From Thalia democratica (Eukaryota): 64,000 bases of DNA. The DNA lies in assembly GCA_965202585.1 (NCBI GenBank), contig OZ241829.1, positions 50,716,001 through 50,780,000 on the forward strand, written 5' to 3'. The notes beneath the pieces were generated by a model. That model did no database searches. It was not told the DNA's origin and was given only the letters and a program-made list of their open reading frames with translations. The position numbers and the translations under genes were made by a program. Shown in pieces: positions 926 to 48,800 of this stretch. Every line of letters starts with the position of its first letter. Position 1 is the stretch's first letter.

Positions 926-3686
926 CTATATGAAAAAGAACTTTAAACTAATACTTGTGCTTTACTTAACTAAAATTTTTAGTTAGCTTTTATAGCCATT
1001 ATTATATATAAAAAACTTTAGTTCTTTAAGTTTGTATATAATTTAATTGTTAATGATACTTAGATTTAGACAACATTATGATAAAACTCTATCACTTCGA
1101 GTATAAGTTATTGTTAGTGACACTTGACTTTATATAAAGTTAAACACTACCATAATTGAATTTTAAACATCGTTTGTTAGCAAATTTTATTGCATGCTAT
1201 AATTAATCAAAAACTAAAGTTTACATCTAGCTGGTGTTAAAACAAAAAATTAAGAACTTTCAAATGATTTAAAAGCTTAACTTTTTTTATGTTAAATATA
1301 GTTTTTGTTTAAATAGCTTAACTACTCAATCACTTAACTTCAGATGGATATAATTTTAAGATTTTTTTTTAAACTTGTTAAACATTACACCTGTAATTTA
1401 TCAAAAGGAAAATATGTTTAATGGTTATTAATAAAAATAACAAGTTTAAAATATGTTTCTTGCATACTTTGTGTTTAAAAATCAAAAAATGTTATTAATG
1501 TTTTGGTTATTTTTAAATTTTCAGACAACTTATAGTCTGTTTTAAAAAATTAGTTTACTTCGTACTTATTTAAACCTTAAACAAAAACTAAAGACTTTAT
1601 AAACACATTTTTGCAAACTTAAAAATAAACTTTGTTTGAAGAATTTTATCCTAGTAATTATAAATATATATTACCTTTATCATTTAATAACACAAAATTT
1701 TCATTTAATACAACTATTGTTCAAATTTTTAAACTACTTTTCCGAGAGAAAAATAGTAAATGTATATATGATTTTTTAAAATTAATAAAATACAATACTG
1801 TTTCGCTTTGAACTTGTATTAATTATATAAATTAATTATTATGTATTTTTACACTGTACAACCTTACAACTATGTTTAGTGTACTTAAGTAGGATCTATA
1901 AGCTTTAGTAAAAAAAATTATGGAGGATTTTAAAACAAATATACTAATTTAAAACTAGATAGAAACTATTGTCTTTTTGTAAGACTTTAAGAAAATAATA
2001 AAAAAATGAGGATCTAAAGTTTTTCGATTTCGAAAAAGCATTAAAACTTATCCAACTATTTCAGTTAAGAATTATATAGTCATATAGTCCTACTTATAAA
2101 TTTAAAACAGATGAAACCATTCCTTAAACAGAAACCGCTCAGTTCCAACCCGCCATCATTTCTCACCCGATTGATCAAGGGTAATGGGTAACATTAAAAA
2201 ATAAATAAAAACTAGAAAAAAAGAATAATAGAAAAATAAATAAACTAAGAAATTAAAATTATTTTTGGATGGAATTGTGCGCTGGTGGGAAATGATCTTG
2301 GGTGGTAATTGTTAGTATACCCCTTTAAAATTTGTTTAAGTGTTTTTATAAAAATAATCTTAAAAACTTAGTAAAAGAAACAAATAGAAAAGTTACTAAG
2401 AGCAAAAACATACTAATGGTATTTAGTTCTTTGTTGATTCTTGTATTACTAGAAAATAGATCAGCAAATGTATACAAACTGTAAATTTTCAATGCAATGC
2501 TTATTAAAAAAAAAGTAGCATTACAAGCCACATATTTTCGACGTCTGATCTAAAATACTTAACTTATTAGTAAAAATATTAGTACTACGATAGCTTGATA
2601 AAAAGTCTAAAACGTTAATATTTTTAAACAAACTAAGCAAAATACTTTAAGCAGATAAAGAGCAAAACTAATATACTTTTTGTGTTAGATATAAAATAGT
2701 CTAATGCTGTTTTGTTACTTATTTAATTAAAAACAAACTTAACATTGAACAAAATGTTTTAAATTAGAAAATATACTATAACAACACTAAAATTTGCAAA
2801 ACGTTAAAAAGTTTTGATACTTTTACCCTGCATAGTTATAATAATATAAATTTTTTTTTATTTGCAGTAATTAACCTACACTAAAAATTTTTAGTATTTA
2901 AAACAATTGTTGCAATAATACATATTTTAAAATAATTTAAATATGATGATTTAAATGAAACAAACAATGCTACACTGAGTTTATATTTTCACATTTAAAA
3001 AGGTAAGGTTGTGTATACTTTCAAATAAAAGTAACTTTTTTGTCAAAGTATAAAACAATTATTATAAAGATTTTTGTGACGGATAAAAAATATAAAAAAT
3101 CCACAGCTTTCTTGATGTTAATTAAACTACAAAATCCTAAAACAAAGCTAATCTTTCTAACATCGCACATCTCAAAAAACTTGATTAGAATTATAAATTA
3201 AATTGCCATGTTATATTTGTTACTGAAAATTTAAATAACTGTTATTATAGAAAGCATGTTAAAAAGCCCAAATATATTAAAAAAAACATATTATTAGAAA
3301 AAAAGTTTTCAAAGCAAAGAGTAAGAATGATTAAAAACTAAAACATTTACTTAAAAGTAACAAATTAATTGTTGTGTACAAAAAGAAAAAAATAAAAGCA
3401 AAACTAAGATTGGTAATATTTTTTTATTTCAAAGGTATATTTGTCTATAATTTTTTTTTTCAGAAACTATACGTTAAACTAGATTATACAACATAAAGCA
3501 TTTACAAAATTAATAACACAATTAGAAATATCACCAGGCCATTTTGTTAATTAAATTAAAACAACATTCATTAAGATAGGCACAAAAATCTATTTTAATA
3601 TTTCATTTAACGTTTATCACGTTTAAACCTTTATGCTTAATTAGTATTTTGACAAGTGTTTACAGTTTGTAATGTGGAAGTATTTT

Positions 3687-39800: not shown

Positions 39801-42800
39801 TTAAAAAGGTTTAATCATTATTTTGAAGTATTTGAGTATTGGAACTTATTTCTAAGTTTTACGGAATTTTACAAACAAAAATTTACCAGGCTACTTCATA
39901 AATTTAGTAACTTATGTTTTTTTCTATATTAGTTACAACTTATTAAAATAGCTTTATTTTTTTCCCTTGTATGCTTTCTTGAACTTTTCAGCTAGCTCAA
40001 TCCAAATAAGTTTTATAAAAATACTAAATAAAAAAAAAAAATAAAGTTTTTGCTACTTCTTTGACCAAAGTTTCAAACTACAACAGTTTTAAATAAAACA
40101 AAGTAAACTTTCACATGCACAGTGGGCTGGCAAGTGGTCATTGACTATTTTCGCGACTAAGCAGTTAAAGCAAGATTTTTATTTAATTGTTTAGAGCGGG
40201 GTTTAGTCTTTTAAAAACTCGGTTTATTTCTGTTCTGCTTAAAGTATACTAAAAGTTATGTAAGCTTAAATGTAGCCAAAGTTTGCTTTTTTTAAGTTTA
40301 AAAAAGCCTCGAAAAATGCTTAAATTTTTGTCAAAATTAAGGTCTACATCTACTGTTAAAAAACACCTTATAAGCTTTTATACAAATACTTTTTTTTAAG
40401 TTTTTTCATTTCTTTGGTTTAATGTTCATTGAAAAAAGTCAAAATTCTTTGAATATTTAAATGTAAAAGTATATTATTTCTCATTTAAAAAATCTTCTAT
40501 TCTCACCGAAAATTCATTGATGCTTTTCTGACAATTTTGGGTATTCTTCAGGGTTAATTTTCTCAATTCGCCACCGAAGAACCAACATAATTTTTTTTTA
40601 AATAATCTAGTAAAAATGACAAGGAATCTATATACAAATTTACAGACAAATCTATTATGTGGAATATAACTATTTTTTTGGTTTTGAAAAGCGATATTTC
40701 TGTTAAAAAAATTGATATAATATCCTATCCCTGGTTTTTCACTGTGAAAAAAAAGACCATTTTGTATGTTCTAGAAGGTTCTTAATGTGTATAGATTCAC
40801 TTACTTTTGTTTACAGATCATTTAAGCTCCAAGAATGATGAGAACAGTTAGTATTGGTCAAAACATGGTAGCTTAGTATATGTTTTAGTCATTGAAATAG
40901 TTTTTTTTATACTATTTTAGCAAATTAAAGGTTTTCTTGAAAAACCGTATCCCACAGGCCATGGTGGAACTTCTACAACAGGTAACGAAGTCAAAACTTC
41001 GCTAAACACCAATAATAGGACTCTGCTGACGAAGCATATTTCTGATGTTAGTTTAAAAGAAAACATTTACAAAATTATTATGTATGTTTCCATTATTTTA
41101 TGGCCTATAAATTCTAACAGAAAGATTAATGTAGAGAAATACTCAGTCTTATTTCAAAAAACAATGATGCTGGTCATGTCGGTTAAATGGATTCGCTTTA
41201 CTCCAACTACGCATACTGTTCTCGCACATAGTGCTGAACTAATTGAGCAAAACAACGGTAGAGGTTTGCTAAACTACACCGAAAGTGGATTGGAAGCTAA
41301 AATTAAGTTTCTAAGACAGTAAAGAATGAACTTTTCAAGGAAAACTTCTCAGTATGAAAATTTAACAGACTGTTTAAATCGATTATGGGACAAGAGTGAC
41401 TACGATGTTAATAACACTTTAGACAGACTGAATTGCACTTATTGTAAAGAAGTCGGACATACTGCGCGAAGTTGTTTGCAGCTAAATTAAATAAATTCAT
41501 CATGTATTTCAGAATGAGAAACGTTGTTACATATGCTTTGTGCTACTGAATAGAGTGTTTTATTTATTTGAGAAACTTAATTTCAAAGAAGTTTTAAGAA
41601 CTTACTGTTTGACTTATATTTTATAGTAAATTTAAAGTACTTTTTTTAATCACAGGCTAAATTATTTTGTTTTTTGCACTGTTTTGCATCGAATAAATGT
41701 TTTTATTGTTCAAATTGTTTACAGTTTTTTTCTTTTGATAAACTAGTACAAATGTAACGTTATTAATAATACAAACTTTGATATACAAAGATCAGCCTTA
41801 AATTAAAAATAAACTGTATTTAAAGTATAGTTTCACCCGGCTTGATATTGAAAATTCATTCATATTTAAACTAAAATGGAAGTAAATGTGACTCTCTTGA
41901 GGTAGCCAATTATAATTTTCTTTTTTTTTTTAAGTTTCTTTCTTTAAAGTTTCATTAGAAATTAAAATTTAAACTATTTTTTAAATAAAAACAAACATTA
42001 TTCTTATTGTAACACTAAGTGTAACTTTAATTTGTATTATAGTGCTTCTTATGACAGTTTTATGTCAATGGCCGCTTGATCCCCGTTTTCAGCCCACTGT
42101 GACATGTTGTAGAAAATTTATAGTTTTTATTTCTACTCATTTATCAAATACTTACTAATTTTAATATTCCTTACTTTATATATAAATAGCTAATAAGACT
42201 TAGATAATTTTTTTAACTTTTTTTTAGATCAGTTTTGGATCAACATGTATCTGATTTAAAGCAAAGATTACAAGATGAAAAAAATCACAACAATAAAAGA
42301 TTAGATAAGCTAAATGAAGAAGTTCATAATAAGGAAATCGAACTTAAGAATACAATAAAAAATCATAATATACTCAAGTAAATAATAAGTTTAAAACCAT
42401 TAATTTTGTAAGAGCGCTTTTACTAGTTGATAATGAAGAAATCGAAACTAAGAATACAATAAAAAATCGTGATATACTCAAGTAAATAATAAGTTTAAAA
42501 CCATTTAATTTGTAAGAACGCTTTTTCTAAATTCAATATTTGTTTTTCAATCTCAATAACGATAAAACAAAGTTAACTTTGTTCGTATTTGTTAAAAACT
42601 TACGAGACGAAATGCTAAAACTTTTTTTGCAAAATGTTTTAATTGTATTGAATAGTTTAGATAATAATATCAGTAATCAAAACAATCTAATAATGATTAA
42701 AAGTAGGTTCAATACATTTTTATGTGACATAATACATCCTTAAGCATAAAAACATTTATAGAGACAAATTTCGGGATTTAGAAACAGAATTAAGCAAGAT

Positions 42801-45800
42801 GAGTAGACAGGTACAAGACAATGAACACATAAAACAGCGATTAGTTGAGAAGGAGTGTTTACTAAATGATGCTTGTAAACATAAACAAGTTGTACAAGAT
42901 GAATGTGAAAAGTATAAACATCAACTTACAATTGTTAGAAATGAAGTAGAACTAATGAGAAAAAAAGCTGATGATGAAGTTTGCGATGTTAAAAAGTGTG
43001 TTTTCGACTAATACTTAAGATATTTAGTATTAAAGTTGAAAATAAACATTAAACAAACTTTCAAACTTGAAGAGTTCTTTAATATAGACCTACTTAAAAT
43101 GTATTACCACTAAATTAAATGTACATATTTATACTTACAGAAGTTTACAGAAAAATAAAGAAATGTTTGTATGTGAAAAACAAAAACTTCAAAATTCTCT
43201 TAAAGAATCTAAAGATATTTTAAAGAAAGTCAACTGTGAAAAGGAAAAGACTAAAATAAATTATAAAAAGTTAGTTTTGTAAAGAAAAGTAGGAACTGTA
43301 TTAATTTTTTTCAGCATTTTATATCATACAATAGAAATTTGAAACCACTTAAAATTTAATTATATCAAAGATTAAAAGTAAGCTGCTTCAAGAAAATTCA
43401 AAATTTGTGCAATGAAAATGAAATACTTAAAGCAGAACAAGAGAAGCTTCAAATTCAAATTAAAGCCGGAAAGTTGGTTGTATATATTTAGTAAAACATA
43501 AAACTCTTTATGTGTAGTTTGAACGTAGTAATTTAAGCTTTCATACTTGTTTTAGATTGAGCTTAAATACTTTCCTTTATATTTAGGTAAAATTGTGAAT
43601 TAAAATTGTTAATAAATAAATAGTTATAAAGCAAGTATAAAATACTGTAAGTTTGTTAGTATAATAAGTTTTTTTTTAATATTGAACAGTTTTATACTTT
43701 CTACACTAGTTTAAATATTTTTTTTAGAGTAGTAGTATGTGTTTTTTTATTATAAAAAAAGAATCATGTTTTCTATTTTGGTTTTGTAAATAAGCCATTT
43801 ACAGTTGTTTTTAGTGATCTGCCAGATACAAGATCCTAATTTTTTTTTAAATAACCGGATCCGGTCACATCCTAATGTTATGGATCCAGTAGATCAATGA
43901 ATTAACTTTACTTGTTTCAGCTCCTTCCAGTTTTTTAAGAAAATTGTAGAATATAAAAGTGTTTACAGATCTTTAGCCCCATATTAGTTGACGAAAAAAT
44001 ATTTAGAGTTTTTTATCTTGAAACTTTAAAATAAGAGAATTTATGATAGTTTCTTTATATTAATATAAAGAAAAATTATATATATATATTTATTTATTTG
44101 ATTATATAAAAAACAACGTATTATATAATTATTATAATCAAATAAATATTTAGCTCCAAGATTTGTTTTATCAAGTTAAATTATCAAGTTTTTACGCCGT
44201 TAGTCGGAATAAAGTTTTAACACAAAAACATCTGTGGTATATATATGTATGTAAAGAAATAAGTTGATTAACTTAATAAATAAATTTTTTCAACACAGAG
44301 CCCATCTTAAGGGCTTTTTAAAAAAATAAAGTTTATTAGAAAACGTAAAAACTTGCAGAACTCAAGTTTCGTACCTACGCACTCCTCAACTGTAAAACAA
44401 GCTCAAAATAAAGTACAAAACAAAAAATTCAAACGAAAGTTTAAAATTTAAGCATAAGTATATTATGACGTAGATATAAAACTGTTAAAAATCATGCAAA
44501 ACGGCCTGTACAAAAATTATCTTCCCAATCGACAATAAACTGGCAAAAGTTCATAAAACTTCAGTGAGTAACTACAAATTTGAAATGAAATTTGAATAAG
44601 ATAAAAAGTTAAATAAAAATAGAAATTTAAATTAATATAAAGCGAAATCAAAACTTATTAAACTGTAAAAGCGATTTTTTTATATGTCTACAAGACGATA
44701 CAAACTCGCTTCTTTTGTTTAGGCAGGTCTTATCTTTCAGTGCATACACAAGGCTGTTGCTTCTTTGAGACACAGGCTACATATCGGGCTATTGCCGTCA
44801 GCTATAGACTGTGCTCTTTTTATAACTTCCCAAGATATTTCAAAGTCAATGCCGCTGTGGCTCGGTCTTTGGCAGTTAAAATATACTTATTATTACAAGA
44901 TGACTCATTTAAAGGACCGACAAGATCTATGTGAACAAACTGGAATCGTTCCGTATTGTCTGGAAAAAAACCAATTTTTGGACGATTATATCTTGTTACT
45001 TTGGTCGCTTGACATACCACACAGCTTTTGACCCAATGAGTCACATCTTTTATCAATGTAGGCCAGTAATAGTCTTTTGCAATAGACTCGATTGTTTTAT
45101 CAATTCCCAGGTGCAACCTATCATGGGCCACATTAAATGCTGTTAGGCGCATAGATTCGGGCAGAATGATTCGCTTATTATTTTCGTCTACCACTACCGC
45201 TAAATTATCTGGTTGTAAATATTCGACCGTTTTCTTCATATTACGTGCGGTATCTACTAGCCCCGGTTCATTACATTGCAAGACCGCAATAACTTCCCTA
45301 TTTATCATATTAAAGCTAGTCGTATTTTCCCCGATCACTTCATTTAACGGACTACCTAAAATTTCCTCTTCACCGTCTAAATCACCGTAATCAGACTCGC
45401 TGTCTTCAGCCTCTGACTCAGACGTATAAACAAAATCAGAATCCTGGTTATACGCACGAACATGCATTGCCGACTGTGGGGGTCGGCTTAAACTATCTGC
45501 TACTACATTATCATGGCCATCTATATGCCTTACTATTGGATTAAATTCCTTGATTGCGCATATCCAACGTTGTTCCGCTGGAGAATGATTACCCATTTCG
45601 TTTTTAATGGCCCTTTCTACTGATTTACTATCAGTACGTATTATTAAGGATCTCCCCAATATTCTGCTTTGAAAGTGCTTAAGAGACAAATACACCCCGC
45701 GAAGTTCCTTATAAAAAGTAGAACGTACTTGCTTAAATGGAGGGAGCTTTTTTGAAAAAAACGCAAGCGGTTGCATTCCCCCATTTCTCCCTTCTTGTTC

Positions 45801-48800
45801 CAGAACTGCGCCAACGTGACTGTCGGAAGCGTCCGTGAAGAGAACTAGGGGTTTTGTGTGGTCTTCATAGCTTATTGTTGCTGCTTTAACTAACAGAGCT
45901 ATTGTGTCATGATAAGCTTTGATTTGGCCATCAGTAAGTTTAATAATTGCCCTATTGCTTGCCTTAGATCCCCCCGAAATTTCATTAAGCGGTGCCATTA
46001 CTTCGGCCAAGTTTGGTATGAATCGATGATAGTAATTAATCATACCAATTACCCTTTTTAACTCTTTGCGCGTGTTTGGTAAGGGTAATTTTTTTATAGC
46101 TTCTACCTTAGATTCCATAACATCAACCCCGTCAACACCTACTGTATGACCTAAAAAATCTACCTTAGTTCTAGCAAAAGAACATTTTGCTTGATTTAAA
46201 AATAAACCGTTTGTCGATAATGTTTCTAAAACCTGTTTTAAATGTGATATGTGACTGTCCGCGGAATCTGAAAACACAAGAATATCATCTAAATATACAA
46301 AAGTGAAAGCCCCACAAGAGGACAAGATACTGTCCATAAACTGCTGAAAACGTGTTGGCGCATTCCGCAACCCGAAAGAAGTCACCTTAGGGACGAATAC
46401 CCCGGAATTAGTTATGATAGCAGCATATTTTCGTGAGTTTGGATGAAGAGGTAAGCTATGGTAAGCTTCTTTAAGATCTAACGTGCTGAAAAAACGGGTA
46501 CCTCCCGGAATTCTTTCCGAGAGCGTATCTATGCGCGGTAGCGGGTATGAAAATGGGCGTGTGTGGGCATTCAAAACTGTATAATCAACACAAATACGCA
46601 AATCACCATCTTTTTTGGGCACTACCGTGATTGGTGATGCACACATGTCGGCATCCCCCTTTACAACAGCACCTCTCGCAATTAGGTCTGAATAATTTTT
46701 ATCTACCTTTTGTTGACAAGTTAAATTACATCTTCGCGCCTTAATCATTCGCGGTTTATAATTGTCAACTATAATTTCTAGAAAGTGGTTGTGTTTTCTA
46801 GGAGCAGTATAATCAGGAGTTTTTGTAAGCTCAGGGTAATTCAACAGTAGTGCTTCACACTTGGTCTCTAACGTAGCTATGTTATTACTATCCTTAACTT
46901 CCCCCGTATTAATTGACACAACTACCGACGCAGGCAAGTCAGCGGCCCTAAACAGTTTAGTCGTTTTGTTAGACAATTGATGCGTCAATTCTAACGTGAA
47001 AGGGCATATTAACAGTTTGTTTGACATTAAAATGTCCATACCTAAAATGCCATAACTCCTATACTCTTGAGTAACCCAAAAATTATGTTTAATGGTTTTT
47101 AAATTACCTAGCTTAAGGTCAACGCAAGCACTCCCTATGGGGTGGATTTCATTGTCGCCAATACCCTTTATAGTTCTACTGAACGGCTTAAAGTAGTGGT
47201 TTATGCCATTTGTTAGATTCTTAGGCAATATAGAAACTTCACATCCAGAGTCAATTAAGAAAAGAACGTTTGTAACATTGTCCTTTGCAAATAATAGACT
47301 TTGAGGCAAGGTTTTTGGATTTATAGACGATTTATTTAAATAGCAAACGACCAATTAGTTTTTACAGTTGGTTTTGTCGTGATATCATTACGCAATTGAG
47401 AGTGAGAGTTTGTTTCAGGTGATGGCTTTTTAGGCTGCCATGGTTTGGCAGAGGGACGAATTGGTACGGATTCTACAGGCTTATTAAGAGGAACTCTGTT
47501 CCCATCCTCATGTCCTCTCATTGTTTTGAAGATGGGAAATCGTTTTTTTGATCGTGTTGTTGCCGTAACGGGGACATAGGGCAAGTTGAAACTGCAGCAC
47601 AATAGTCTGCCCTATCTCCAAACTTTGCATGTTTGTGACAAAGCGCGTTTTGTTCGTAATTCGTGCGCTTGTTATACCCTTCCCCGAAATACCCCTGACT
47701 ACGACTGTGTTCATAGCTGCGGAAATGTTCCCTTTTTTGTGGAATGTTCTCATGCCATTTTTGTTTGTAATATCTCTTATTGTGCTTAAATCGCTGAGGT
47801 TCGTATGAAAAGTTTTTAGCATTTTCAAAGACCCTCTGTTCTTCAATGTCGCATATAAATTCCGTGCGCCTAATAAACTCATTATATTCAAGCCCAAAAC
47901 ATTCCTTTATTTTGTTTTTTAAATTATTAGGGGCATGTCTGTGCATAAAGTATTTAATTCTGTCTTCCTCTTTAGACTTTGCCCATTGCTTAGCTGCCAA
48001 AAACAAGTCCTGGAATTGAACTGGCTCTGGCCATGATGGGCTTGCACCTAATATGCGAGGCAATTTGCTTCCTTTCCCTTGTAAAAAGTTAACAAGACTG
48101 CTATACGTTCTGTCTTCGTCGTGTGTTTCAACGAAGTCAATTATATCTGAACGGGGCCAAATTCTCTGGAGAATTTCAAACTTCTCCATTTCAGATGTTA
48201 TACCATAAGCCGTACACCGGTCTTCAAAAAAACGTAACTCCACAGCCGGATCGCGTACGGCATCAATTTTTTGAAAAAGCTTACAATTTTCAAGAGTTTT
48301 TTTCTTGAAACTTATTTGTGTTGACATTTCACCTAAAGCGTGCGAGGTGTGATTGTTAAGGGTGAGGCCGCTGTCATTTATGGTCTTATTGGTATCTAAT
48401 CTTCTATAAATAGCTTTTAGTTCATTTTTTAGTTTATTTTTTTTCTCTAAAACCTTAGCTTGCTCTAGTAAGTGAGCTAAATCCTCAACGTCTAAGTCAA
48501 CTTCATCTAAAGCATTAAAATCTACAATTTCATTATTGTCCCTAGTCTGCGCGCTTACTTCTGTTTCATGAGCGCTGTTTATTGTCGCTTGAATATTGCT
48601 GGGAGATTGTGAGTTCGATATCAAGTCAGAGTCGCCATTGAAGTCAGCAGATACTGATGGCTCAGTATCTGCATGACCCGTTAACTTATTTTTTTGTCTT
48701 AAGCCCTTCTTAGTCTTAATCATTCTAATGGTATAGTAATCACTTAAATAGTAGCTTAAACTAAAAACAACCGGTTATAATTTACACAGCACAGTTTAAT

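Follow-up and report, generated by a model that had tools for sequence, protein, structure and literature searches.

The window, i.e. the whole 64-kb stretch of DNA that was analysed, has a GC content of about 24%. It carries a transposon of 1,984 bp which, as read from the sequence, is flanked on either side by a perfect 5-bp duplication (TSD). Both ends of the element open with the same terminal 12-mer, CACAGTGGGCTG, comprising the heptamer CACAGTG and the adjoining GGCTG. Only two occurrences of this 12-mer were found in the window, inverted with respect to each other and coinciding with the ends of the element, compared to about 0.01 expected even when one mismatch is allowed. The 15-bp block that follows the 12-mer likewise occurs only twice in the window, at the same two ends (about 0.12 expected with two mismatches). 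The coordinates of the features are summarized in Table 1.

Table 1. Features of the transposon locus with their positions in the 64-kb window
Feature	Position	Strand	Basis or remark
Left TSD, ACATG	40113-40117		Identical to 42102-42106
Whole element, non-autonomous internal-deletion Transib derivative	40118-42101	+	Bounded by the TSD plus the two inverted 12-mers
5' (short) end, 28 bp: CACAGTG (40118-40124), GGCTG (40125-40129), single G (40130), distal block CAAGTGGTCATTGAC (40131-40145)	40118-40145	+	Read directly
5' internal region, no transposase coding detected	40146-40920	+	tblastn with longer relatives
Transposase remnant, last ~200 codons	40921-41553	+	Translations; alignments of relatives
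Internal deletion junction	40922-40935	+	The longer copy L006 has 414 bp more transposase sequence here
C-x2-C-x3-G-H-x4-C zinc-knuckle tail, CTT1/CCGHC type	41434-41475	+	Translation
3' (long) end, 38 bp, read inward: CACAGTG (42101-42095), GGCTG (42094-42090), 11-nt segment AAAACGGGGAT (42089-42079), distal block CAAGCGGCCATTGAC (42078-42064)	42064-42101	-	Read directly
Right TSD, ACATG	42102-42106		Same letters as 40113-40117

The block is offset from the 12-mer by 1 bp on the left and by 11 bp on the right, and its distance from the heptamer is 6 bp versus 16 bp. The left and right blocks are identical at 13 of the 15 positions, and the similarity between the ends runs out after 28 bp on the left and 38 bp on the right. 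This end anatomy, together with the TSD, had been described in the initial annotation and was exact to the base on re-reading. As the aligned ends read, a conserved 11-nt segment at the 3' end replaces the single G of the 5' end, thereby shifting the distal block by about one helical turn. The 12/22 geometry that had also been proposed is a post hoc count, for which the block's final 9 bp have to be treated as a 'nonamer'; the actual spacing is 1/11, or 6/16 when counted from the heptamer. This choice of nonamer was rejected, as the conservation of the block across families lies in its first 11-12 bp (CAAGYGGNCAT) and not in the last 9. The earlier caveat that the block is not the ACAAAAACC nonamer is in accordance with this core.

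The interior of the element retains only the C-terminal part of a transposase gene, in which the region around the third catalytic residue (TESGLEA) is preserved, and this remnant is interrupted by three in-frame stops at 41320-41322, 41488-41490 and 41515-41517. The region of the first two catalytic aspartates is deleted in the window copy, as is the alpha11-alpha12 ZnB region, which is covered by the partial relatives P0177, P0012 and L011. The remnant is 89% identical to the metagenomic homologue P0171, itself uninterrupted, and residues 154-354 of P0177 align to 40936-41538. The tblastn search with the longer transposase relatives gave no match in 40146-40920, and no record was identical to the 54-aa ORF of the window.

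The direct match of the 133-aa piece translated from the window to residues 345-425 of HzTransib (Helicoverpa zea, PDB 6pqn) was weak (E 0.31), and the same piece gave no match to RAG1 in Pfam. As these direct matches are too weak to stand alone, the Transib homology rests on the profile of the clade. The profile of the clade's transposase C-terminal domain was compared with the PDB, and HzTransib was the best solved-structure match at 2.6e-21, with lancelet BbeRAG1L at 1.1e-9 and RAG1 at about 3e-6. The HzTransib match spans the catalytic region at the C-terminus with the motif of the third catalytic glutamate, and the HMMER alignment ends before the CCGHC motif. The full-length relative P0034 scored 37 bits with Pfam RAG1 (cut-off 25) and matched HzTransib at 7.6e-22; the full-length relatives are about 670 aa long, which is the size of a Transib transposase. 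The tail of the window copy matched Pfam zf-CCHC with an E value of 0.001 and 19.5 bits, slightly below the cut-off of 20.8. The CCGHC motif is kept in six of the seven aligned relatives, and in lancelet RAG1L this tail is a TIR-binding clamp (PMC10629977, PMC9435367).

The 5-bp TSD, the CACAGTG terminus, the C-terminal transposase remnant and the clade profile support the Transib/RAG1-superfamily identity given in the initial annotation. The element shows the features of the Transib superfamily, namely a TSD of 5 bp, which is the Transib/RAG length (PMC1131882, PMC4840297), CAC... RSS-heptamer-like inverted termini and a remnant of a RAG1-core-homologous DDE transposase, and no RAG2-like gene was found in the window copy. 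All Subgroup I Transibs were reported to combine asymmetric bipartite TIRs with a CTT1 (CCGHC) tail (Tao et al. 2022, Natl Sci Rev, PMC9435367). Like the window clade, they have a single gene without RAG2L, asymmetric bipartite TIRs, a 5-bp TSD and the CTT1 tail of the form C-x2-C-x3-GH-x4-C. A different tail, CTT2, is found in the transposases of the HzTransib type (Subgroup II; PMC9435367), and HzTransib too has a 5-bp TSD. The window copy carries both Subgroup I features, i.e. asymmetric bipartite TIRs (1/11) and the CTT1 tail, and it matches the Subgroup I Transibs by these described features.

Other copies of the same family were obtained from marine metagenomes. The window element is 89-95% identical to L001-L006 and L025, which lie at other insertion sites and are short-read contigs that are possibly chimeric. 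The sequencing runs containing the element sequence were marine metagenomes and those of three organisms. The 3' end of L003 is identical to that of the window at 38/38 bp, and that of L006 matches at 37/38 bp with its sole change inside the 11-nt segment; the flanks of both differ from those of the window copy. The contig L005 carries a short-type 5' end (at 129) together with a long-type 3' end, the latter being the window's 38-bp end minus its last 5 nt; L005 and L010 are without the outermost 5-6 nt. The 5' internal region of the window copy shows 89% identity with L005:157-987, whereas L006:23-197 matches 40764-40935 and L006:612-1784 matches 40922-42101. The window copy and L005 derive from a longer form (represented by L006 and L001) by internal deletions that differ, which implies that the asymmetry goes back to this longer parent rather than to a single deletion lineage. 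No autonomous copy of the window family was recovered among the retrieved sequences, in which L006 and L001 represent longer forms. The check proposed in the initial annotation, whether the 10-bp asymmetry is fixed across copies, holds in the three 3' ends and the one 5' end retrieved elsewhere; with the window copy this is a small sample of four right ends and two left ends. An exact-pattern scan for both end types gave no matches in the viral contigs and none in the metagenome-contig collection, which evidently lacks the pattern-bearing JGI contig L005.

The related families were analysed for the same layout. A complete element of 3.46 kb with the perfect TSD CAGCG was found at L007:8327-11789 in a genome of 37% GC, and the C-terminus of its transposase is 52% identical to that of the window. 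Its 5' end reads CACAGTG-GGCTC-G-CAGGCGGACAT and its 3' end CACAGTA-GGCTT-ATAGAGGGGGT-CAAGCGGACAT; this is the one other family for which both ends of a single element were available. A short-type 5' end lies at L011:158 (transposase 55% identical), and L024 (61% identical) carries the decayed remains of a long-type 3' end, with AGAGAGGGGTT, at about 1273. The protein-based metagenome scan yielded 14 loci, of which L010 and L011 alone belong to the close clade, both stopping before the 3' end. The distant families L012, L014, L016, L017 and L020 show a single CACAGTGGG... end each. In the contigs of the longer relatives, L008 (from P0012) and L009 (from P0034), no transposon ends were found.

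The comparison of the families revealed a conserved design for the two ends. The short and long offsets differ by exactly 10 bp in every family seen, so that the distal block stays on the same face of the helix, and the two end types always occur together on one element, the short one lying upstream of the transposase reading frame in every case. The 11-nt segment of the 3' end follows A-N-A-N-N-G-G-G-G-N-T (ANANNGGGGNT) in three families (window, L007 and L024), with positions A1, A3, G6-G9 and T11 invariant and 7-9 of the 11 positions conserved between families. Beyond the block, each end has its own conserved continuation, which is T-rich (TATTTT / ATTTTT) at the 5' end and (A/T)AACT-T at the 3' end. 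The 3' ends of the window element and L007 match at 29 of 38 positions, whereas only 2 of 30 match at positions 51-80; by this alignment the layout is kept while the adjoining internal DNA diverges past alignment. On the ends compared, the one-turn asymmetry with constant polarity is a fixed property of the window family and at least one sister family. The layout is, by the same comparison, older than the split of at least two transposase families, and probably older than the split of four.

The idea of a 12/23-like asymmetric end pair, raised in the initial annotation, is not new; asymmetric Transib ends were already described in 2005 (PMC1131882) and 2022 (PMC9435367). Transib5 of D. melanogaster and Transib2_AG and TransibN1-N3_AG of Anopheles gambiae have an RSS12-like 5' TIR and an RSS23-like 3' TIR (Kapitonov & Jurka 2005, PMC1131882), and, as in the window element, the short end precedes the transposase and the long end follows it. 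These insect families have an A-rich nonamer-like distal element at a 12/23 +/- 1 spacing, whereas the window element has a marine host, the G/C-containing CAAGYGGNCAT at 6/16 bp and a conserved G-tract in the extra segment. PflRAGL-A (Ptychodera flava) and AanRAGL (Aureococcus) share with the window clade the heptamer, an adjacent conserved element, a length-asymmetric spacer and a distal conserved element, as well as the 5-bp TSD and the CCGHC tail, which is there on RAG1L. In PflRAGL-A the two spacers differ by 10 bp, and in AanRAGL they measure 4/13 bp (PMC10629977, PMC9435367). Unlike the window clade, both carry a RAG2-like gene, and the distal element of PflRAGL-A is an AT-rich nonamer. 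The 12RSS/23RSS pair of V(D)J recombination shares the heptamer CACAGTG at the cleavage site and a second element whose position differs between the partners by about one turn of the helix. The window ends differ from it in having a 10-bp and not an 11-bp difference, no ACAAAAACC nonamer, a conserved 5 bp adjacent to the heptamer and a conserved extra segment. The RSS layout of a heptamer, a variable 12/23-bp spacer and an A-rich nonamer is hence replaced here by the 6/16 spacing, the CAAGYGGNCAT block and the conserved ANANNGGGGNT.

It is considered highly probable that the element is a dead, internally deleted and non-autonomous Transib of the CCGHC (CTT1)-tail type, having ends that are unequal by design, with asymmetric synapsis without RAG2 as the mechanism we infer. 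On this reading, the element arrived by cut-and-paste transposition, which generated the 5-bp duplication ACATG. In the proposed mechanism, each of the two active sites of a transposase dimer would hold the 12-bp terminal element of one end, while the distal block would be read by a second DNA-binding module, namely an NBD-like domain and/or the CCGHC tail. The extra turn, and perhaps also the G-tract itself, would set the 3' end structurally apart, and the resulting synaptic complex would be intrinsically asymmetric, favouring one 5' end together with one 3' end with no RAG2 partner.

Two other explanations were considered for the element and its ends. The 10-bp difference could be an indel private to the window copy, or to a single non-autonomous lineage that was amplified recently, and meaningless for the family; the initial annotation had entered such an indel as a caveat, and every retrieved copy of the window family is indeed a deletion derivative. 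The same 1/11 layout is nevertheless present at other insertion sites (L003, L005 and L006), in copies with independent internal deletions and in the complete L007 element of a different genome and 52% protein identity, and the single ends of L011 and L024 also fit. Misassembly of the window locus is countered by the differing flanks of the metagenome contigs and their 5-11% divergence, and a private indel is most improbable. The element could also be a deleted RAGL (RAG1L+RAG2L) transposon and not a Transib, and 'without RAG2' would then no longer describe the asymmetry. Invertebrate RAGL elements likewise have the CCGHC tail and asymmetric bipartite TIRs (PMC10629977), and the autonomous parent of the window family was not found, which leaves room for this reading. 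It is made very unlikely by the clade profile, which favours HzTransib over RAG1L and RAG1 as does the full-length relative, and by the Transib-sized transposases. In accordance with this, the single transposase gene of the complete L007 relative of 3,463 bp is accompanied by no further ORF >123 aa, and in L011 only about 1 kb of ORF-free DNA separates the 5' end from the transposase.

Unlike binding sites at the two ends are known from many cut-and-paste transposons, for example P, Ac and Tn7. The asymmetry may accordingly be conserved without any pairing rule: the 11-nt segment and the subterminal sequences would simply make the two ends differing sites, and any two ends with the 12-bp element would be accepted. 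The end-specific sites could then serve an extra transposase subunit, a host factor, transcription termination or a promoter. This explanation is a serious competitor, with a chance somewhat short of even. The conservation of the 11-nt segment, which is unlike the variable spacer of an RSS, and the separate continuations of the two end types past the block both speak for it, as does the finding that RAG1 without RAG2 drops the asymmetric-substrate requirement and that HzTransib transposes a 12/12 RSS substrate (PMC4840297). The enforcement of the 12/23 rule has been largely credited to RAG2, and HzTransib alone handled 12/12 RSS substrates (Carmona et al. 2016, PMC4840297); in view of these results, a pairing rule should not be presumed for an element that lacks RAG2. 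The absence of a pairing rule agrees less well with the exact 10-bp difference, which keeps the distal block on one helix face in all families seen, and with the independent recurrence of 9-11 bp differences (AanRAGL 4/13, PflRAGL-A 10 bp, RSS 12/23); elements with two ends of one type were absent from the sample, which is tiny.

The 12/23-like asymmetric end pair without RAG2, as put forward in the initial annotation, is upheld for the fixed asymmetry and for the lack of a RAG2-like gene, whereas a transposase that requires or prefers a short/long pair was an overstatement. The view of the extra right-end segment as an RSS-like variable spacer does not stand, since its 11 bp are conserved in sequence in three families. 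Judged by its conserved G-tract, a sequence-specific site of the 3' end fits as well as a length spacer. As a more speculative extension of asymmetric synapsis, for which the odds are rather poor, the transposase itself might read the asymmetry, with the 3' G-tract segment acting as a recognition or bending element that would make 5'/3' pairing obligatory without RAG2.

V(D)J recombination owes its order to the 12/23 rule, the evolutionary origin of which is under debate, i.e. whether the rule came with RAG2 or from the ends of the ancestral transposon. Asymmetric Transib ends have been known since 2005 and their combination with the CCGHC tail since 2022, and the locus raises no new question in this respect. 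What it offers is a well-defined set of substrates for an end-pairing experiment, of which no report was found for any Transib. To the view of the rule as a property of the ancestral transposon's ends, the locus contributes clean natural data: a one-turn asymmetry of fixed polarity is kept across transposase families that are 50-60% identical, with no RAG2-like gene and with the exact RSS heptamer retained. The sequence-conserved 'spacer' of the window clade is a concrete and testable difference from the RSSs. If 5'/3' pairing is obligatory, it would constitute a natural 12/23-type rule without RAG2, operating through a partly sequence-specific 'spacer', and the origin of the pairing rule would precede the capture of RAG2, against the models which credit RAG2 with it.

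The two ends of the element were each composed of the 12-mer CACAGTGGGCTG and a 15-bp distal block, which are separated by 1 bp at the 5' end (short type) and by 11 bp at the 3' end (long type). Throughout the 64-kb window the 12-mer, at one mismatch or fewer, was present only at these two ends, against about 0.01 matches expected, and the 15-bp block was present in the same two places only. When the ten extra bases were taken out, the arms of the window copy were identical at 25 of 28 positions, after which the likeness ended abruptly. The end anatomy described in the initial annotation is correct as read in the sequence and is far above chance. The short motifs directly inside the two distal blocks are T-runs on the plus strand at both ends.

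Coordinates of the element, its ends and associated features (window positions unless a contig is named)
Feature	Location	Strand or reading	Remark
Left TSD ACATG	40113-40117	read directly	
Left end CACAGTG-GGCTG-G-CAAGTGGTCATTGAC	40118-40145		directly inside the TSD
TATTTT	40146-40151		directly inside the 5' distal block
Only coding-like DNA between the ends	40921-41553	plus	
Only transposase coding (tblastn, longer relatives as queries)	40936-41538		
ATAAAA	42058-42063	inward reading	directly inside the 3' distal block
Right end CACAGTG-GGCTG-AAAACGGGGAT-CAAGCGGCCATTGAC	42101-42064	minus, inward reading	
11-nt segment of the right end	42079-42089		
Right TSD ACATG	42102-42106	read directly	
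ORFs of 844 and 401 aa	44820-48723	minus	GC about 36%, about 24% around
Complete sister element, 3,463 bp	L007:8327-11789 (ENA ERZ25067903 ctg32160, record 1108848-1129432)		perfect TSD CAGCG
3' end of L005, beginning at TGGGCTG	L005 ~2139-2144		outermost 5-6 nt absent
5' end of L010, GTATATGGGCTGG	L010:81-92		outermost 5-6 nt absent
Tandem repeats of about 170 bp closing the contigs	L010:3012-3464; L011:3011-3463		self-matches, 77-88% identity

The coding-like DNA was translated into the last ~200 transposase residues including TESGLEA, with three in-frame stops (41320, 41488 and 41515). This fragment alone gave a marginal match to HzTransib (PDB 6pqn, E 0.31) and no match to the Pfam RAG1 model. 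An exhaustive HMMER search returned 347 homologues, many of them of 600-790 aa. Among the relatives, the 671-aa P0034 matched HzTransib (7.6e-22) and RAG1 (about 1e-8), passing the Pfam RAG1 threshold of 25 with 37 bits, and the profile built from the C-terminal domain of the close clade (A3) gave 2.6e-21 for HzTransib, 1.1e-9 for lancelet RAG1L and about 3e-6 for vertebrate RAG1. The metagenomic relative P0171, 89% identical to the fragment, keeps the same frame with no stops. The 5-bp TSD and the CAC terminus are as expected of the Transib superfamily, and the CCGHC tail is present on the transposase. No transposase coding was detected by tblastn with the longer relatives in the 5' 800 bp of the window copy, and in a longer copy, L006, positions 40922-40935 are the exact site of 414 additional bp of transposase sequence. 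Because coding is confined to that single stretch and the longer copy has the extra sequence, the window copy is an internally deleted, non-autonomous and mutated element of the Transib superfamily. The GC content of the window is about 24%, and the two ORFs at 44820-48723 resemble the pol (protease, RT, RNase H and integrase motifs) and gag of an LTR retrotransposon.

The other copies were reached through protein fragments and then the contigs carrying them; exact-pattern scans of contig collections for both end types gave 0 matches. The copies of the same family were 89-95% identical to the window copy. In L003, from Tara Oceans, the 3' end agrees at 38/38 bp and adjoins a different flank, and L006 has a window-type 3' end with one substitution, within the 11-nt segment, beside a third flank. 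L005 shows both types on a single contig: its 5' end is of the short type, CACAGTGGGCTG-G-CAAGTGGCCATTGAC, and its 3' end is of the long type with the segment AAAACAGGGAT; its outermost five bases are missing, and its internal deletion differs from that of the window copy. The missing termini of L005 and L010 are either immobilising terminal deletions or artefacts of short-read assembly. The caveat of the initial annotation that the 10-bp asymmetry could be a private indel does not hold, as it recurs in L003, L005 and L006, at different flanks in L003 and L006 and with a different internal deletion in L005. The window copy and L005 are independent deletion derivatives, so a longer common parent must already have had the asymmetric ends. 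Longer forms of the family, perhaps autonomous, exist, since the transposase parts of L025, L004 and L001 (93-94% identical to the window copy) diverge upstream of 40922-40938 and the coding region of L001 extends ~50 aa farther, up to the contig end.

The asymmetry was also observed beyond the family. The protein P0010 matches the window fragment at 52% identity; the 2.97-Mb contig that carries it belongs to a different genome, with 37% GC over the 20 kb read. The complete sister element on L007 has the 5' end CACAGTG-GGCTC-G-CAGGCGGACATGTAG and the 3' end CACAGTA-GGCTT-ATAGAGGGGGT-CAAGCGGACATTTAG, so spaced by 1 versus 11 bp, and its short end lies upstream of the frameshifted transposase frame, as in the window. 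A third family (L011 and L010, 55% identical) has a short-type 5' end on L011, and both contigs end short of the 3' terminus; in a fourth (L024, 61% identical) the decayed 3' end carries the 11-nt segment AGAGAGGGGTT followed by GATGCGGACAT. Between the window and L007, 29 of 38 positions of the 3' end match, as against 2 of 30 at positions 51-80, and the ends are therefore under constraint, with an unalignable interior. The asymmetry predates the window family and is clade-wide. The fixed polarity agrees with Kapitonov and Jurka, who likened the 5' end to RSS12 and the 3' end to RSS23 (PMC1131882).

The initial spacing of 12 and 22 bp depends on taking the final 9 bp of the block for a nonamer and cannot be kept. 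What the families conserve of the block is its opening 11-12 bases, CAAGYGGNCAT with the core GYGGNCAT, at short-end positions 14-24 and long-end positions 24-34, and the last bases vary (TTGAC, GTAG, TTGG). The defensible spacings are 1/11 bp if counted between the two conserved elements and 6/16 bp if counted from the heptamer, with a difference of 10 bp. The 11-nt segment of three families (AAAACGGGGAT in the window, ATAGAGGGGGT in L007 and AGAGAGGGGTT in L024) shares 7-9 of 11 positions pairwise; because its consensus ANANNGGGGNT is conserved, it is no sequence-free spacer. Subterminal conservation reaches beyond the 28/38-bp arms in the related families, and the continuation past the block is end-specific, a T-rich run at 5' ends, (A/T)AACT-T at 3' ends. 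The ends thus differ in sequence as well as in length.

The 'without RAG2' part of the earlier proposal is supported. No second gene was found in the window copy, no ORF above 123 aa accompanies the transposase in the complete L007 element, and in L011 the ~1 kb from the 5' end to the transposase is free of ORFs. The full-length relatives are ~670 aa, which is Transib-sized, and the A3 profile favours HzTransib over RAG1L by twelve orders of magnitude; the autonomous parent of exactly this family was not recovered among the copies retrieved. In its architecture the asymmetry is independent of RAG2.

The bipartite ends are conserved with a fixed 10-bp offset and polarity, and the asymmetric elements are mobile, given their distinct insertion sites and the perfect TSDs. 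If the biochemistry of RAG, RAGL and Transib is taken as a guide (PMC10629977, PMC9435367, PMC4840297), a transposase dimer would engage the 12-bp terminal element of each end in its active sites, cleaving at CAC by nick-hairpin chemistry, and the distal block would be contacted by a second DNA-binding module, either an NBD-like domain at the N-terminus or the CCGHC tail, or both. In lancelet RAG1L the CCGHC tail clamps the TIR (PMC10629977). The synaptic complex would be intrinsically asymmetric because the distal block lies one turn farther at the 3' end. Alternatively, the two ends may just differ in the binding sites they carry, with no particular pairing required. Carmona et al. credited RAG2 with enforcement of the 12/23 rule and found HzTransib to act on 12/12 substrates (PMC4840297); this alternative is therefore given substantial weight, somewhat short of an even chance. 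Of the 12/23-like reading first put forward, the real, clade-wide asymmetry without RAG2 in the architecture stands and the 12/22 numbering falls.

The concept of asymmetric ends is already published. The hypothesis of Yakovenko et al. (2021) was founded on a prior description of such ends; Tao et al. (2022; PMC9435367) defined Subgroup I Transibs, all with asymmetric bipartite TIRs and a CTT1 tail, and reported AanRAGL spacers of 4/13 bp; Martin et al. (2023; PMC10629977) reported a 10-bp asymmetry for PflRAGL-A and counted both the CCGHC tail and TIR asymmetry among the traits known earlier from Transib. The window element shows the same TIRs and tail as Subgroup I, a fit resting on these two criteria, and is not novel in kind because this combination was already published. 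Its own features are a distal block containing G/C, in contrast to an A-rich nonamer, and a 'spacer' with a sequence-conserved G-tract.

The sequence of 40050-40400 was found mostly in marine or seawater metagenome runs of at least nine studies (2014-2025), and additionally in three organism-labelled runs; its carrier is therefore probably a widespread and abundant marine planktonic organism. In some samples the family has a high copy number or abundance, and the assembler coverage of L025 (ENA ERZ17174903 NODE_40281) was 254x. The L007 element is a ready second substrate pair for end-pairing experiments, and the window element adds cross-family evidence for maintenance of the offset.
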